Part shown: positions 4,842-52,199 of the stretch, one piece after another
Layout of the letters: the number at the start of each line of letters is the position of its first letter
Numbering within the stretch: position 1 is the stretch's first letter
The notes under the pieces: generated by a model
Seen by the model: the letters and a program-made list of their open reading frames with translations, nothing else
Databases searched by the model: none
Told to the model about the DNA's origin: nothing
Source of the DNA: Syncephalis fuscata S228
Lineage: Eukaryota; Fungi; Zoopagomycota
Assembly (NCBI GenBank): GCA_025786725.1
Contig: JAHLTZ010000020.1
Coordinates: forward strand, 1 to 64,000
DNA: 64,000 bases
Direction of reading: 5' to 3'
Position numbers and translations under genes: made by a program

Positions 4842-5761
4842 TTAATTAATTTCAAAAAATGCTGGTAGTGGTGCTGTAAATTTATTAACAGACAATCTGG
4901 TAGTTTTAGCAATCCATGGGATAAAATGATCTATACGAGCATAGAATCCCATATTACCTTCTAAACCACAAATTTCTGTATTTTGTCTAGTAAGTTATGG
5001 CCAAAACTGGTAACACCGGCCTGTAGCCATGCTGCGGCAGCTTTTTCACCGACAGTACTGTTAGAATTTGCTATTTCGACCAATAGAGGCCCCCCAGAGT
5101 CTCCAAGACAGGTGTCTTTTCCAGGTACATCTTCAGTGCACAGCAATTGGTCACTGTATAAGGGATAATCTGGATTAACTTCAGTACAAAACTCCGTACT
5201 TCCATTGGGAAGATCAACTCTATTTAGTTTTGGTGTCAATTTTTGTGTTTGATCTCTGCCCCATCCAATAGCTGTAAACATTTGATCTACTGATAGTTTG
5301 GATGTGTCGTTTATAAGTTTGACAGATTGAATGGCATTGGTGAATTTAAGTGGACGCCTCAATTCTAACAAACCAACATCATGGCTAATAGTGGTTCCGT
5401 TATATTTGGGGTGTGCATAAATTTTTTTTGGAATAACTAAATTATTATTTATATTCGAGTTCAATCCAATGTTAATGCCATATTTTGACGGATCGTTTAA
5501 AATTATTTTTCCTGCTTCTTCGGATTCTTTAACAGCTACTACACAATGAGCGGCTGTTAAAATCCAACGATCTCCAATAATGGAGCCCGTGCATGTATTG
5601 ATTTCATCGTATAAAAGATGCACAGCAAACGGAAACGCAGTGACTGTGGTGTTGTTGCCTCCAGCAATTTTCATTACTGGATTGAATGGGGTGGCTTTTG
5701 CCATGTATGATGTTGCAATCACAATGGCAGTCAACGTTGTAATAAAGTCCAGCTTAAACAT
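4842..5761 (-). CDS. Secreted S1 (trypsin-family) serine protease, paralog 1 (apparent -1 indel in a homopolymer at ~4981-4984)
   Basis: Signal peptide, K|IAGG activation site, LTAAHC, DVGLL, GKDTCLGDSGGP; restoring one base gives ICGLEGNMGFYARIDHFIPWI...* matching the paralogs. Confidence 0.93.
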
Positions 5762-5948
5762 TGTTGTAAACGTCGGCAGTGCTGATGTGTAAATGGAGTA
5801 ATGGCACTGTCCGCGAATACTAGAAATTTGGATAATATAGGTAATAAATGCGATGTTTGGGATTTGCAACTGTTCTTTACCTGAAAATAATTTGGTATTT
5901 AAATAGTAGTATTAAACAATCAAGTTTTTGGAATACAATATTGGCTTG

Positions 5949-6353: not shown

Positions 6354-7146
6354 TTCTATAAGTCTTTGTCATAATAATAAAATATTGTTGTTTATGTGTT
6401 GCATTCTTTGTAAAGCTATGAAATAAAATGTACACATAAACAGAATGTAATTATACGAAATGGGTTAATTAACATTATTATTATATTACTGTGAGTTTAG
6501 AGATAAGAATATGTATTAAATTACTCGGCATAGATATATTAAAATACTCGTGCAGCATACGCTCACTAAAATACATATATTAACTCTCCATCATACAATA
6601 AAACATTAACGTTTACTCTATTCTACTTTATTAATTAGTCAGTTGTCTTATCGTTACAATATAGGAGAAATACATTAATTCTATTTCGTTTAGCAATTCA
6701 GCATTTTGCTTTTTAGATTATGCTAGCGCTTTATCACTTTATTGGCAATGTATTAAATAATTAAAATTATTATTTAAACTATATGTAACTTTATTTAATT
6801 TCATTTCATTATATTAACAATTTTATTGGCAACACATTCTATGATAATGGCTTTTGGCGTCAAATAATATTGATTCATTTTTTATAAATACAAACAATAT
6901 TATGCAAATATCTTTATGCTATCTGTTGTAGAATACTTAATAGCAGCGCAAATAAGTAGCGTCAGTTTGTTATTATTGTACATATATGTAATTAAACCGC
7001 AATAAACTATTGTTTTTTGTTTTATAATATTTGCTATTTATTCTTGCAATCGCTTTAATTCAGGAATTTAACTGAATTGTACTTTGTTTCCCCATATTTT
7101 GAGTCCCTAAAGTAAAATTCGTTTCAATTAAATTCATGCTATTATA

Positions 7147-7567
7147 CGCAACATAGTTATATTACTTCATATTAAAATGCTATTAATAAATCGATTTAAA
7201 TAAAGAATGTAGTATGTTATTTAATTTCTTTGAAATATTTGAGGCCGATTATTGCTGTTGTTAGCCATATGTAGAAAAATGCTTGAATATTAACATATTA
7301 CAATGAGTTACATTCACTACGATTACAGCCATGTTAGCTATTTTAGCAATGATATCAACAATTATCTAGTTAATTGTTATATTTGATTGTGCTATTATTG
7401 TTGCACTAATATATACATGCTATGTTTTAATTCATTTTTTAACCTTTAATTTTAATAACACCCAATCTATTGAACATGATGATGGGCGGTAAATGATATC
7501 AAATATCAAATTATAATGCATTGAATACTTTACAGCAACCATAATATGGATTATCATTTATTAACAT
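7147..7567 (+). repeat. Dispersed repeat, homologous to 16954-17280 and (3' part) to 1040-1160
   Basis: 7147-7417 aligns with 16954-17222; CTATTGAACATGATGATGGGCGGT at 7467 is identical to 1058. Confidence 0.85.
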
Positions 7568-7571
7568 CTAC

Positions 7572-7970
7572 ACTAGCACACAGCCTCTACCTATTCACCC
7601 ACTTAATGATAAAATTCCACTTATTGCTTTTGGAGCTGTCCGATTTGCCATTTCTATAAAAGGCAAGGTTGCTGGACTGGCCAATCGTTGCAGAAGATGC
7701 TCAAAACTGCTGGGCAACAAGGATTTTTGGTGATCGTAGATATTGATGAATACAATACATCAAAGTCTGTTTCAAATGAAAGAAAAAGATGGCAGATTTA
7801 CATCTCGAAGAACACAACAGCACAATGCATAGCGTACTTGCTTGTCAAAACAATGATTGCCGTACGGCATGGTAGCGTGATGTTAATGCAGCAGAAACAT
7901 ACACAGTATATTCAGTACAATGGCCAGTGACGAACCAAAGCCTTCTGATTTCTTACCACTACTATTATAA
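7572..7970 (+). pseudogene. Fanzor (eukaryotic TnpB-like RNA-guided endonuclease) C-terminal remnant: RuvC-II, zinc finger, RuvC-III
   Basis: Joining frames across three -1 indels (~7687, ~7764, ~7895): KIPLIAFGAVRFAISIKGKVAGLANR-LQKMLKTAGQQGFLVIVDIDEYNTSK-VCFK*KKKMADLHLEEHNSTMHSVLACQNNDCRTAW*RDVNAA-(E/R)NIHSIFSTMASDEPKPSDFLPLLL*; matches Fanzor1 hallmarks iDEyxTSkvCxxC...h.vL.C...C...wnRDvNAa.Ni...RP..F. Confidence 0.88.
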
Positions 7971-8013
7971 GAAATCAAACTGCACTGTTGCATCAACATC
8001 ATAATCAAACCAT
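7869..8013 (+). ncRNA. Candidate Fanzor omegaRNA scaffold (nested stem-loops overlapping ORF end)
   Basis: Stem 7878-7894/7985-8001 (17 bp, 1 mismatch, 1 G-U), ATGGT 7869-73/ACCAT 8009-13, inner perfect 10-bp hairpin 7946-7955/7968-7977; position is as expected for TnpB/Fanzor guide RNAs; expression unknown. Confidence 0.5.
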
Positions 8014-8670
8014 AATATGTTATTGTAAGTAGCATGAATACTATTTAACATTTATTAATACTGATATTGGATATTGGAAATAGTGCTGATTAATTAAGAC
8101 ACTGATAAATTCAATTGGAGTTGATATGATACTACAACAAATACCACTTCTTAGTAGTAAAAACTGGTTTAGTAGTAAAAACTGGTTAAAGGTTTAATAT
8201 TCGAGTTATTGAATTTTTGTCCTTCAGTTTAAGGATAGAGGCTCAAAGCACAGCTCTCAAAATTAAATAAAACAAAGCGGATCATTATATTGTTTTATTT
8301 ATGGTTGTACTCCTTATTTGATTATTTGTATTTTACAAAGCTATATTGCTAAGAACTGTTAATTTAACATGCAAATAAAATCATAGCTAATTCATTGACA
8401 AACTTTTATTCATAAACACCAAGCCTTGCAATAATGAAAGACAAAACACACTCAAATCAAAAAAGTATGCATCAAAGTAACGATCTATTTGTTGGTGCTC
8501 GTTAGTTGGACAACTAATAACAATAACTTTACTTACAAGTAAATGCCATCCTTTAGATACATACGTGCACGCTAAGAGATAAAAATTCATACATAAATCA
8601 CGCTGTCGATGATCTAGTAATTCAGTTCAAGTTAGGCTCTAGCCAATCAACCATCTAATATGATCAGTAC

Positions 8671-16886: not shown

Positions 16887-16953
16887 ATAGTTGGATTTTA
16901 CTTTGAGTTTCTAAAGCAAGATTCACCCCAATCAAAGTCATGCCCCTGTGATG

Positions 16954-17280
16954 CGCAACATAGTTATATTACTTATATTAAGATATAACTAATAAATTGA
17001 TTTAAATAAATAATATAGCATACTATTTAATTTCTTTGAAACGTTTGAGTTGATCATTATTATTGTTGGCTATGCGTGGAAAGATTGATCAATATTAACA
17101 TATTACAATGAGTTGCATTTACTATAATTACAGTTATGTTAGCTATCTTAACAATGCTATCAATAATTATTTAGTTAATTGGTCTATTTGATTGTGCTAG
17201 TGTTATTGCACTAATATACACATATTCAGTCTATTGAACATGACCATGGGTAATGAGTTATATTGATAATCAAATTTATT
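16954..17280 (+). repeat. Dispersed repeat homologous to 7147-7510
   Basis: Alignable by eye; CTATTGAACATG at 17231. Confidence 0.85.
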
Positions 17281-23893: not shown

Positions 23894-25257
23894 ATGGAGT
23901 CGTTTATACGGCTTATTTTACTATCTATCGGTATGTTCTTTGGTGCTTTATTGGCCGGAGTGCTGCCATTCCGGCTTGGTTTAGCGGATAGTCGTCGCAA
24001 TCTAAGTAGCCAGCGCTGGACCGTGCTGGGCAGCGGTTTGCTAGTCGGTGCCGTACTTACAGTAATTATACCTGAAGGCATGGAAGCTATGTATAGCGGC
24101 AAATCAAGCACCGCCTCCACACTGCTCGGTGTACCGTGGCACTCGTGGATAGGCCCAACGCTGGCGTTTGGCTTTAGCTTCATGTTACTCGTTGACCAGG
24201 CCGCTTCGATGCCCAAACGTCGACCACGCGCGTCATCAACGGCCAGCACGGGTAGTGAGTGCGATGGTGCAACACCCAACCAGTACCCGGGAGCTGAATC
24301 GCGTACGTCTTCCGCCACACTAGGTCTACTAGTGCACGCTGCGGCCGATGGTGTCGCCATGGGGGCAGCATCGACCACCAATAGCAACCAGCTGGAACTG
24401 GTCATTTTTGCCGCGGTATTATTGCACAAAGCGCCAACGGCGTTTGGTCTTTCTACTGTACTATTACGCGAAAGATACACTCGTGCCCAAGTATTGCAAC
24501 GATTGTTAGCCTTTTCAGTTGCTGCCCCTATAGGTGCACTACTAACTTATGGTGTTCTGCTCGCCAGTTTTATGGCAGCGGGTATTTACAAAGACCACGA
24601 CGGACTAACACCCGATCAGTTAACTCGATTAAATCGATTGACTGGATTACTTTTACTATTCTCGCAGGCACTTTCCTGTATGTGGCTACGGCACATGCCT
24701 TACCCGACACACTTGCTATACTCAACGGAGGGGCATTTCATAAGCATGGCACCTCGACTGCAGAGATCATCAATCCCGATGATCGCTTCTATTCTGCCGA
24801 AGAGGAGGAAGAAGATGGAGACAACGAAGAAGATGGCGAGGAAGAAGAGCCCAGCACTAGTGGCGATAATGGCGCACAAGGCGATACCGATGAAGAGATA
24901 TTACTTCAAGAGCGTATTACTACACCTTTTGAAGTCAACCAGCATGAGATACACTTTCCAAATACCCAGCAGTATGGCATTACAGAAACAGCCGCATCTC
25001 CATCCACCAATATACCAACTATAACTGCCAAAAAGCTTTCTGGCATGCTTAATACACTGGCCAGTCCACGCCGTTCTACCAAACATCCACGGCGCTGGCC
25101 AAGACAAAGTAAAGTAAATCAGGCGCGTAGAATGCGCGCCAATAGCCGTGCTATGCTGTCACCGTCAACTCATACACCACGCGATACTTGGTCATTAATT
25201 GCATTTCTAGTAGGCGTCTTTATACCGGCACTATTTTCAATTGGCCACCATCATTAA
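23894..25257 (+). CDS. ZIP-family metal transporter (ZIP9/Atx2-like; -1 indel ~24664)
   Basis: GLLVHAAADGVAMG, LLHKAPTAFGL, restored LFSAGTFLYVATAH, C-terminal HHH. Confidence 0.92.
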
Positions 25258-47322: not shown

Positions 47323-48234
47323 ATGTTTAAGCTGGACTTAATCACAACATTGGCCATCATTGTAATTGCAACATCACACATGACAAAAGCCACTCCATTC
47401 AATCCAGTAATGAAAATTGCTGGAGGCTACAGAACCACAATCACTGAGTTTCCTTTCGCCGTGCGTCTTTTACGCACTCAAAATTATATATGTTCAGGTT
47501 CCATTATCGGCGACCGCTGGATCTTGACGGCCGCCCATTGCATAATTGATATCGATGAATCTAAAAAAACAAAAAGAGTAGTTATAAGAGACCCATCAAA
47601 ATATGCTATTAACATTGGATTGAACTCGGATGTAAATCCCAATTCAATTGTTTCAAAAAATGTCTATGCACATCCTAAGTATAACTGGAACACTGCTAGA
47701 TATGATGTTGGTTTACTGGAATTAAGTCAACCAATCAAGTTCACTGATGCTATCCAGTCTGTCAAGCTTATGAAGGATGAATCCAAACTGCCAGTAAATC
47801 AGATGCTTACAGTCGTTGGATGGGGCAAAGAGCAAGCCCACAAATTTGCAACAAAACTAAACCGAATTGAGCTTCCCAATGGAAGTCCAGAGTTTTGTGC
47901 TAAAGCTGATGGAAACTATTTAACATATCGTGATCAATTAATGTGTACTGCGTATGCACCTAGAAAAGTTATTTGTGGCGGAGACTCTGGGGGTCCTTTA
48001 TTGATCAAGGTAGCAAACTCTAACGGTGCTGTCGGCAAAAGAGCTGCTGCATCATGGTTACAGGCTGGTATTACCAGTTATACGCAAAATACGCTACGTC
48101 GCGATTCACGCATTTGTGGTGAAGAGGGCAATGTAGGATTTTATGCTCGTGTAGATTATTTTATCCCTTGGATTGCTAAAACCACCAGATTACCTATTGA
48201 TCAATTTACAGCATCACTACCAAGAAATGTTTAA
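47323..48234 (+). CDS. Secreted S1 serine protease, paralog 2
   Basis: Signal, K|IAGG, LTAAHC, DVGLL, RKVICGGDSGGP. Confidence 0.96.
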   Translation: MFKLDLITTLAIIVIATSHMTKATPFNPVMKIAGGYRTTITEFPFAVRLLRTQNYICSGSIIGDRWILTAAHCIIDIDESKKTKRVVIRDPSKYAINIGLNSDVNPNSIVSKNVYAHPKYNWNTARYDVGLLELSQPIKFTDAIQSVKLMKDESKLPVNQMLTVVGWGKEQAHKFATKLNRIELPNGSPEFCAKADGNYLTYRDQLMCTAYAPRKVICGGDSGGPLLIKVANSNGAVGKRAAASWLQAGITSYTQNTLRRDSRICGEEGNVGFYARVDYFIPWIAKTTRLPIDQFTASLPRNV

Positions 48235-49606
48235 AGCCAAATAAATAGTTCAGTAATTATTTACCTAGTCCAATAAATAGATACTCAATTGATTGATTTA
48301 GCTGTTTTTATCTTGTTTAATACTTTTGTTGCTTTAGTCAGACTTCAATGGTCATTAATAATTGCTGTGAATTTATTTATATGCCTACTATTTCAAGAAA
48401 CCATAATATGTATATAGCAGTAAGGGCATTGCTTGGGTAATTGAATATACATGGCGCATCCATACCACCAGCTTATCTGAGGCTGAAAGACACTTTTTTA
48501 TTATGATAACGAAGGGTACACATTAATAAGTATCATTTATACATTGCTACATGCTAAATAGAATTGCCAATACACTTAAACTGTGTTGATTTTTATCACG
48601 ATTTTGTTTTATTGCAAATCGTGATGACGTATAATGTTGTATTTGTTTCTTTACATCTTTATTTTTGCTATCTGCTACAGCTAATACAAAGAGATTATTA
48701 TCGATATGTATTGACCACTGTAGCTATGCCGCATCCAGTATTTTCATACTCGTTTAAAATCTTACATACAATGACATACTGCTATATCTCACATTGTGTG
48801 TAACACAACCCATCAGTTTATAAATACAGGTTAGTTGACGGGAATTAAGTCTTTGTTGCAATATAGTGGCCGCAACGTTCTATTTTCCAGGTTTATAGTG
48901 TATCGGCATCTGCTGACTTACAGGTAAAGAGGAAACAGTGTAAATATTAATGCTACACACAAAGGATATACATATGAACACGTGATAGCATATATGACAA
49001 AGGTATGGCGCACAATGCAATAGGAAAGATTTTATGGGGTAGTAGCTTACATCTACTATTCCAGCATATATAGAAAGGCATATTGGGGATAGTACCCAGT
49101 CTAAAATGGTCAGCATGTTACAATGTAGCAGTATTAGTATTGTGCGGGTCCAAATAATAATAACAGCCCCCAAAAAACAATGGATTTATTTATTATTGCT
49201 TTTAGTTTTAATTTTGTAGCGTTGCAGTTTATACCAAAAAATAGCTTAGCACCAATATTGATTGATAGCTAAATTTAATTTATTTACTATCTGTATCGTT
49301 TATTGCTTAATCGTTATTTTGAGTAAATAAAATAACCTTGTTGCAATAAAAAAAGTGCTTATGGTAGTATAAAGCATGCTATGTTGGTTTCATATGTGGG
49401 CTCAAGAACAAAGAAAATCAGTTAATATTACGTTTCAACAAATTTGATTGTTTAATATTAGTATTTAAATAATATTTGACTTTCTGGATATACAGCAATT
49501 ATTTACAAATCAAATTATCACACACATCACCTATAACATCTACATTTCAAGTGCAATCTCATAAATTTTAAAGCCTTACACATTAGCACTACAAGTGTTT
49601 ACAACA

Positions 49607-50527
49607 ATGTTTAAGCTGGACTTAATCACAACATTGGCCGCCATTGTGATTGCAACATCACACATGGCAAAAGCTACTCCATTCAATCCAGTAATGAAAA
49701 TCGCTGGAGGCGATAGCACCACAGTTACCGAGTTTCCTTTTACTGTGCGTCTTGTATACGATAGAACCTACTCATGCACAGGCTCCATCATTGGAGACCG
49801 CTGGATATTAACTGCCGCCCATTGTATAGTGGACACTGGAGAGTCTAAAAAAACCGGAAAAAGAGTTATAAGAAATTCATCAAAATTTGATATCAACATG
49901 GGACAAGACTCGAATATAAATCGGAATCCAATTGTTCCAAAGAGTGTTTATGTACATCCCAAGTATGACGGAATTATTGCTAGATATGACGTTGGTTTAC
50001 TGGAATTAAGTCAACCGCTTAAATTTACCGATTCTGTCCAGCCTGTCAAATTTATAAAGGATGAATCCAAATTAGCAGTAAATCAGATGCTCACAGCTGT
50101 TGGATGGGGCCAAGATCTAACGCAAAAATCTGTATCAAAACTAAACCGTGTTGACCTCTCCAACGGAGGTTCAGAGTATTGCGCCAAATCTCATCCAAAT
50201 TTTCTACCATATCGTGATCAATTATTGTGTAATAGATATGTACCCAAAAAGGGCACCTGTCACGGAGATTCCGGTGGTCCTCTATTGATCAAGGTAGCGA
50301 ACTCTAACGGTGTTGTCGGTAATAAAGCCGCTGCAGCATGGCTACAAGCTGGTGTTACTAGCTTTGGCTACAATATACTAAACCGCGACTCAGACGCTTG
50401 TGGTGCAGAAGGAACTATAAGCTTTTTTGCTCGTATAGATTATTTTATATCATGGATTGCTCAAACTAGCGGAATGCCTGTTGGTCAGTTTACGGCACCG
50501 CTACCAAAGCAATTGGAAGCTAAATAA
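49607..50527 (+). CDS. Secreted S1 serine protease, paralog 3
   Basis: MFKLDL signal, K|IAGG, LTAAHC, KKGTCHGDSGGP. Confidence 0.96.
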   Translation: MFKLDLITTLAAIVIATSHMAKATPFNPVMKIAGGDSTTVTEFPFTVRLVYDRTYSCTGSIIGDRWILTAAHCIVDTGESKKTGKRVIRNSSKFDINMGQDSNINRNPIVPKSVYVHPKYDGIIARYDVGLLELSQPLKFTDSVQPVKFIKDESKLAVNQMLTAVGWGQDLTQKSVSKLNRVDLSNGGSEYCAKSHPNFLPYRDQLLCNRYVPKKGTCHGDSGGPLLIKVANSNGVVGNKAAAAWLQAGVTSFGYNILNRDSDACGAEGTISFFARIDYFISWIAQTSGMPVGQFTAPLPKQLEAK

Positions 50528-51275: not shown

Positions 51276-52199
51276 ATGGCTAAAACGGACTTCCTAACAG
51301 TGTTTACCATCACCGCCTTTGCAATATTGCATGCAGCAACAGCTATTCCATTCAACCCAGTGATGAAAATTGCTGGGGGCGACATCACTACAGTTACCAA
51401 GTTTCCATTTGCCGCGCAGCTTGTATACGATCGAAGCGGCTTATGCACAGGTTCCATTATTGGAGACCGCTGGATCTTAACTGCCGCTCACTGCTTGGTG
51501 GACACTGAAGAGTCTAAAAGAACAGGAACAAAAGTTATAAAGAATCCATCGAAATTTGATATCAACATTGGACAAGACTCGAATATAAATCAAAATCCAC
51601 TTGTTCCGAAGAGTGTCTATGCACATCCCGAATATAACTGGAACAAAATTGGTAAATATGACATTGGCTTATTGGAATTAAGTCAACCGCTTAAATTTAC
51701 CGACTCTATCCAACCTGTCAAGCTTATAAAGGATGAATCCAAATTATCAGCAAATCAACCGTTCACAGCTGCCGGATGGGGCAAAGATTTAACGCAAAGA
51801 TCCACATCAAAACTAAATCGAGTTAATCTTTTCAATGGAGGACCAGAGTATTGCGGTAGAATTAATCCAGGCTATCCAGCATATCGCGATCAATTACTAT
51901 GTACCAAATATATACACAAAAAAACTCCTTGTAGTGGAGACTCTGGTGGCCCTCTATTAGTTGAAGTAATAGATTCTAGTGGCACTGTTGGTAGAAATGC
52001 CGCCGCAGCATGGCTACAGGCCGGTGTAATTGCTTCTGTTTACAATCCACGAAGGAATGATTTTAGTATCTGTGGTTCAGAAGATGATGTAGAATTTTAT
52101 GCGCGTACAGATTATTTTATACCATGGATTGCTCAAACTAGCGGAATGCCTATTGAACAGTTTACAGGATTGTTACCAAAACAATTTGAAGCCTACTAA
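51276..52199 (+). CDS. Secreted S1 serine protease, paralog 4
   Basis: Signal, K|IAGG, LTAAHC, KKTPCSGDSGGP. Confidence 0.96.
   Translation: MAKTDFLTVFTITAFAILHAATAIPFNPVMKIAGGDITTVTKFPFAAQLVYDRSGLCTGSIIGDRWILTAAHCLVDTEESKRTGTKVIKNPSKFDINIGQDSNINQNPLVPKSVYAHPEYNWNKIGKYDIGLLELSQPLKFTDSIQPVKLIKDESKLSANQPFTAAGWGKDLTQRSTSKLNRVNLFNGGPEYCGRINPGYPAYRDQLLCTKYIHKKTPCSGDSGGPLLVEVIDSSGTVGRNAAAAWLQAGVIASVYNPRRNDFSICGSEDDVEFYARTDYFIPWIAQTSGMPIEQFTGLLPKQFEAY

Follow-up and report, generated by a model that had tools for sequence, protein, structure and literature searches.

A Fanzor1 remnant on a probable non-autonomous cut-and-paste transposon in the mycoparasitic fungus Syncephalis fuscata

The window analysed here comprises 64,000 nucleotides of Syncephalis fuscata S228 (GenBank assembly GCA_025786725.1, contig JAHLTZ010000020.1, positions 1 to 64,000, forward strand). 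Syncephalis is a genus of Zoopagomycota and a haustorial parasite of Mucorales (PMC12034817), in keeping with a first-pass annotation which, made from the letters of the window, had pointed to a little-sampled fungal lineage; the lineage is indeed under-sampled. A housekeeping enzyme encoded in the window shows 88% identity to its S. plumigaleata counterpart, compared to about 70% for other fungi. At positions 7070-8257, the window contains a ~1.19-kb non-autonomous element in which a Fanzor remnant is embedded, with the following features:

7070-7090, no strand: left terminal inverted repeat ("L-type"), imperfect; the family form starts GGTTGAATTG and is decayed here.
7073-7293, minus strand: terminal 3' module from another Fanzor lineage (B), directed outward through the left end.
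7294-7465, no strand: internal patch, also present in some sister copies and in a fragment at 17091-17223 (BLAST against the loci read).
7489-7576, plus strand: predicted 88-nt intron of the Fanzor A gene, with a GTRAGT-type donor and a ..CTAG acceptor in sister copies.
7577-7970, plus strand: last ~130 codons of Fanzor1 lineage A, with the RuvC-II Glu, a CxxC/CxxxC zinc finger and the RuvC-III Asp.
7971-8257, plus strand: 3' non-coding tail of about 290 nt, common to sister copies, where an omegaRNA would lie.
8151-8187, plus strand: 18-bp tandem duplication, private to the window copy.
8239-8257, no strand: right terminal inverted repeat ("R-type"), family form inward GGAGCTACTG..., decayed, its end placed to within 1-2 nt.

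Elsewhere in the window, 10-bp-period minisatellite arrays lie near the contig start (347-856), and a Ty3/Gypsy-type retrotransposon on the minus strand (55441-59952) retains an unbroken 1503-codon gag-pol frame with gag, zinc knuckle, protease, RT, RNase H and integrase, and looks young.

The coding remnant was aligned to a sister copy with an open frame of 131 codons (L018:1432-1824, minus strand), relative to which it carries two stops (codons 66 and 99 in sister-copy numbering), four single-base deletions (codons 37, 60, 104 and 128, the last just before the stop) and one three-base deletion (codon 69). The peptide pieces proposed in the first-pass annotation were found at their positions across three plus-strand frames, with KIPLIAFG to ANRC and again NIHSIF to KPSDF in one frame, MLK to DIDEYNTS in a second frame and VCFK to RDVNA in a third, as were its two stops, TGA at 7777-7779 and TAG at 7873-7875, where sister copies carry Cys and Gln. 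The frames are broken by deletions as it had proposed, but it counted only three single-base ones, and two of its joins need correction, the first reading ANRC-RK-MLK and the third NASRN. Positions 7572-7576, which it had included, are probably the end of an intron rather than coding sequence: splice-like signals of the predicted intron are conserved across nine copies, and Hesseltinella and Rhizopus (Mucorales) relatives have an intron in the same linker, a few codons further upstream. Three 65-bp pieces near the contig start (75-140, 1038-1102 and 2334-2399, in alternating orientation) are 85-89% identical to 7447-7511 and resemble this exon-intron junction.

Joined with an X at each break, the window peptide scored 104 bits against a profile built from outside homologues only, compared to 7 bits for the best of 1000 shuffles, whereas its three pieces searched separately returned no Pfam match because they are too short (26-44 aa each). 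The E-x6-C-x2-C motif, which sets the RuvC-II Glu six residues ahead of the zinc finger, is present in the window with its second Cys replaced by a stop, and is intact in sister copies; the RuvC-III motif RDxNAxxN follows the zinc finger. The unbroken sister frame matched PF07282 above the cut-off (2.3e-9, 37.7 bits), along with 580 related proteins of 640-1000 aa in a representative protein library. Named top relatives of lineage A are all from Mucoromycota (Rhizopus delemar, Hesseltinella vesiculosa, Absidia, Mucor and Umbelopsis), with 51% identity to the R. delemar protein and 46% to a full-length 804-aa H. vesiculosa protein, the Mucorales Fanzors matched by the unbroken sister copy being 46-55% identical to it. 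The closest library match to lineage A (52%) is a near-complete ~900-aa Fanzor1, split into three called genes, on a JGI metagenome contig (L064:3777-6552). A profile of the relatives displays DPG, E-x6-CxxC and WQRDxNAxxN, the defining Fanzor motifs (Yoon et al., bioRxiv 2023.08.09.552727), and retrieves the solved Fanzor1s SpuFz1, GtFz1 and PpFz1 (from Spizellomyces, Guillardia and Parasitella) at 1e-56 to 1e-42 but TnpB-like chains only at 1e-9 (a viral, Fanzor2-type one) or weaker, and the family is therefore assigned to Fanzor1. Judged by homology, the window piece is a C-terminal Fanzor1 remnant, as the first-pass annotation had recognized. The RuvC-I DPG motif, present in the nearest full-length relatives, is deleted in the window and in all lineage-A copies found, a loss that lowers the case for a functional Fanzor and leaves that for a Fanzor-derived sequence intact.

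The sequence common to sister copies starts on the left near 7070, where they align on a TACTTTG core, and breaks off sharply near 8257 on the right. A core of ~11 nt recurs at every element end. The ends are of two types, each finishing in GG in the inward reading, and together these form an imperfect inverted repeat of ~20 bp. The R-type terminus had 189 matches in the genome at one mismatch or less, compared to none for the reversed control. At least 40 sister copies were identified at 78-89% identity (40 scored of 681 candidates). About half of the scored copies, which match 7873-8250, start within 7873-7880 and would constitute a sub-family with one fixed breakpoint at RuvC-III, while 16899-17223 in the window is a further fragment of the same transposon family, with a lineage-B end and the internal patch. 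The window copy had been correctly described as a 5'-deleted, non-autonomous derivative without RuvC-I; its extent (7070-8257) and the second, minus-strand Fanzor tail had been missed.

The trinucleotide TTA occurs exactly 7 nt outside the R-type terminus in 33 of 74 exact termini, a few of these 33 being duplicated sites, compared to 5 of 74 at a control spacing of nine bases and a background of about 3%. Target-site duplications were evaluated in 14 end pairs against permuted pairs (7 bp, p=0.06; 8 bp, p=0.26; 9 bp, p=0.91), and none could be established from this set, which we count against our best explanation. Two assignments to known superfamilies were rejected: a TA-flanked Tc1/mariner reading of the CAAAG-TA core, since conservation extends 10 nt further to the GG end, and the three-base TWA duplication of Harbinger or Zator, which is not seen in the flanks. 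Genome searches returned no Merlin-type transposase (PF12762) and 15 MULE matches, none of which adjoins the first 100 termini listed; no transposase was linked to these ends, a further point against that explanation.

The left part of the element derives from a different Fanzor. The B module holds the last ~21 codons of lineage B (about 7286-7224) followed by its 3' non-coding tail, is 80-83% identical to the B modules of sister copies that retain the B zinc finger, and has 307 candidate counterparts genome-wide; lineages A and B are about 31% identical. This divergent layout, with B on the opposite strand, was observed in 14 of the 15 lineage-A copies examined. Stand-alone B elements of 0.5-0.9 kb, bounded by one R-type and one L-type end, are also present, and three longer A copies retain a whole B element whose internal R-type end lies ~200 nt upstream of the A exon, the predicted intron being located between this junction and the exon. 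At one locus, the same B element sits in the same position upstream of a Fanzor of another lineage, D. In the window copy, the internal patch stands in place of the middle of the longer copies. Larger composites were also seen (L057, L058, L059, L024 and L034), in which two lineage-B ends lie tail to tail as a foldback.

Taken together, these features very probably identify the window sequence as a dead Fanzor1 fragment on a non-autonomous cut-and-paste DNA transposon of the Syncephalis genome. For the history of the window-type copies, we favor, with rather less confidence, a nested insertion followed by composite transposition and internal deletions. In this scenario, a lineage-A Fanzor gene would first have received a small lineage-B element in reverse orientation, ~200 nt upstream of the present exon; a transposase acting in trans would then have moved the unit between the outer end of B and the right end of A, as the terminal repeat common to all ends would allow, leaving the 5' part of A behind; and later internal deletions would have yielded the shorter window-type copies. 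The nested B element and the joint movement of the outer ends would together explain why no A copy keeps its 5' part. The proposed order of events is drawn from three copies, among about 30 loci read. By analogy, the ancestor most likely worked as other Fanzor1s do, with an RNA from the 3' end of the element guiding cleavage beside a short AT-rich motif, and cleavage of vacated sites would have helped to keep the transposon in place. The R-type end is the upstream end for lineage B, and TTA ahead of a 7-8-bp duplicated target would thus put the motif at the TAM position, whereas for lineage A it is the downstream end, so that a preference of the transposase would explain both equally well. As a testable lead, the sharp TTA-N7 target rule predicts a TAM for relatives of lineage B.

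Only two points are unusual here: the back-to-back arrangement of tails from two different Fanzors, and the fact that the named sequences closest to them come from the group on which the parasite feeds. At least four Fanzor lineages (A-D) were recognized in the genome, and their relationships were evaluated with a maximum-likelihood tree built on the 122 final profile columns for 54 rows selected among the hits, in which lineage B pairs with Rhizomucor pusillus (100/94), lineage C shares a clade with proteins from Apophysomyces and Mucor flavus (99/98), lineage D lies near Parasitella and B, and lineage A joins an unresolved set with Rhizopus, Umbelopsis, Absidia and Hesseltinella. Forcing the four lineages together was rejected (AU p 2e-17): in this phylogeny they do not form one clade, and each is nearest to Mucoromycota sequences. 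Repeated transfer from host to parasite may account for this pattern, although we rate it as less likely than not. Vertical inheritance of old paralogous lineages also fits, given that the tree is short and unrooted, that its sequence set was gathered with an A query and includes about 20 named relatives, and that Mucorales are far better sampled than Zoopagales; likewise, no match was found between the termini, at the DNA level, and the six relative loci read (Mucorales), where a match would argue for recent transfer. A more elaborate version, which we consider doubtful, is that several lineages were acquired separately from the Mucoromycota on which Syncephalis is a haustorial parasite, and merged into elements with a Fanzor at both ends, TTA-N7 preserving the TAM of B. 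The TAM would then lie upstream of the duplicated target and not at the edge of the element, a placement that seems just as doubtful.

The presence of Fanzor 3' ends at both extremities also raises the possibility that the element was kept for a purpose, with both outward-facing ends producing omegaRNAs, used in trans by an intact Fanzor, and both flanks serving as guides. Ghost omegaRNAs are functional in Spizellomyces (PMC10432273), and the last 100 nt of the tail fold slightly better than shuffled sequences in each of the nine copies (z -0.5 to -2.6), a weak stability compatible with a decayed scaffold and no more. Yet no intact Fanzor was found in the assembly that could use such RNAs, and divergence among copies is higher in the tail (11%, rising to 19% over its last 60 nt) than in the dead coding part (about 6%). 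The whole tail folds no better than shuffles (z +0.69), alignment folding yielded a weak consensus fold and no covariation, sliding windows gave no convincing signal, and the tail has no Rfam match. On this evidence, we consider a two-guide element improbable.

The preferred reading, a dead fragment, is supported by the way in which copies have decayed. Third codon positions show no excess of changes from the majority base (7.5, 6.1 and 5.2% at positions 1 to 3) and pN/pS among lineage-A copies is 0.82, which indicates neutral decay, while stops fall at many different codons. The stops and the truncation are not plausibly assembly errors, as had been suspected, and represent real decay. CpG-targeted or RIP-like mutation was considered and rejected, as transitions dominate yet CpG sites are barely enriched (12% vs 10%). 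The suggestion that the indels might be assembly errors holds in part: some may be, because two host genes of the window show probable one-base deletions, but the codon-60 deletion, common to 8 of 15 copies, is not plausibly one of them. The two genes are a ZIP zinc transporter (23894-24900, plus strand), with a probable single-base frameshift near 24690 that is likely an assembly error, and the first of four intronless genes for trypsin-like secreted proteases (4961-5869, minus strand; 47323-48234, 49595-50527 and 51276-52199, plus strand), three of which are in tandem, with a probable one-base deletion near its end.

These same deletions, the fact that virtually every indel in the copies is a one-base deletion, and the copy that keeps a 131-codon open frame could be taken to mean that the family is alive, its intact lineage-A Fanzors hidden by assembly errors, introns or collapsed repeats. 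The searches make this very unlikely. Across the whole assembly, both a full-length protein query and a full-length profile returned only C-terminal matches for lineage A, and a profile of the middle and RuvC-I region, searched in six frames such that exons are read singly and through stops, found one locus in 29 Mb. That locus (L054; G000:C317:732900-735400, minus strand) belongs to lineage C; no other near-full-length Fanzor1 relic turned up in the genome. The locus covers most of a Fanzor1, DPG motif included, with parts that are about 50-60% identical to Apophysomyces-like proteins, and has several frameshifts and stops, no readable zinc finger and a decayed end. Moreover, stops and a neutral substitution pattern are not indel errors. 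The intact copies envisaged by the first-pass annotation were not found by either protein or profile searches of this assembly, where the sole Fanzor bearing RuvC-I is frameshifted, and the window fragment makes no working nuclease but is cargo between transposon ends once moved in trans. Finally, resemblance to an unrelated zinc-finger family or a bacterial TnpB contaminant, to which the lack of Pfam matches for the separate pieces and weak matches to bacterial TnpB models might point, can be set aside with near certainty, being refuted by the PF07282 match, the 580 relatives, the profile score and the Fanzor1-specific matches, and countered by the eukaryotic gene context, the dozens of dispersed copies, the intron signals, the exclusively Mucoromycota origin of the named top relatives and TnpB model scores of ~20 bits, far under the cut-off.

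The dead fragment described here extends Fanzor1 to a Zoopagomycota mycoparasite and suggests how a nested insertion can leave nothing of a Fanzor gene but its tail. Its value as a source of new editing enzymes is small, since this copy no longer functions and the searches yielded no intact gene, and bench work would be better served by the near-full-length relatives from Rhizomucor pusillus (863 aa) and Hesseltinella (804-859 aa) than by anything in this genome. A further lead is the possibility that RNA-guided nuclease transposons have passed repeatedly from host to parasite, across fungal phyla; a role in parasite-host gene transfer had previously been a matter of speculation only (PMC11423790).

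Fanzors were already known in zygomycete fungi, including the Fanzor1 families of Rhizopus, Mucor and Phycomyces described by Bao and Jurka (PMC3627910) and PpFz1 of Parasitella (PMC11423790), and partial and ghost copies have been reported (PMC10432273), while a literature search returned no paper pairing Fanzor with Syncephalis. Compared to Mucoromycota Fanzor1s, the Syncephalis element has the same C-terminal signature and likewise rides on a terminal-inverted-repeat element without its own transposase, but its host is a zoopagomycete, only the tail of the gene survives, and its termini are unlike those of the six relative loci read. Similar to the Spu-1 partial and ghost loci of Spizellomyces punctatus, it is represented by many non-autonomous copies in which the right end is retained and a short motif is conserved beyond one of the inverted repeats. 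The Spu ghosts, however, are young copies whose omegaRNA still works, and 19 full-length genes exist alongside them (PMC10432273), whereas Syncephalis copies are about 6-11% from the majority sequence, have no intact partner, combine the ends of two lineages and carry the outside motif 7 nt from the end rather than adjacent to it. MCi-2 of Mucor circinelloides (PMC3627910) is likewise a Fanzor1 element whose 5' parts are mosaic and whose target site is patterned and AT-led, but it lacks terminal inverted repeats and has an 11-12-bp duplication, while the Syncephalis element has short terminal inverted repeats. The strong excess of 3' ends and the frequent 5' truncation recall CRe-1, CRe-2 and CRe-3, the Helitron-borne Fanzor1s of Chlamydomonas (PMC3627910). 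No Helitron hairpin was seen in the Syncephalis element, and, unlike in the CRe elements, the truncation is here linked to the nesting of a second element, and an inverted repeat is common to both ends.
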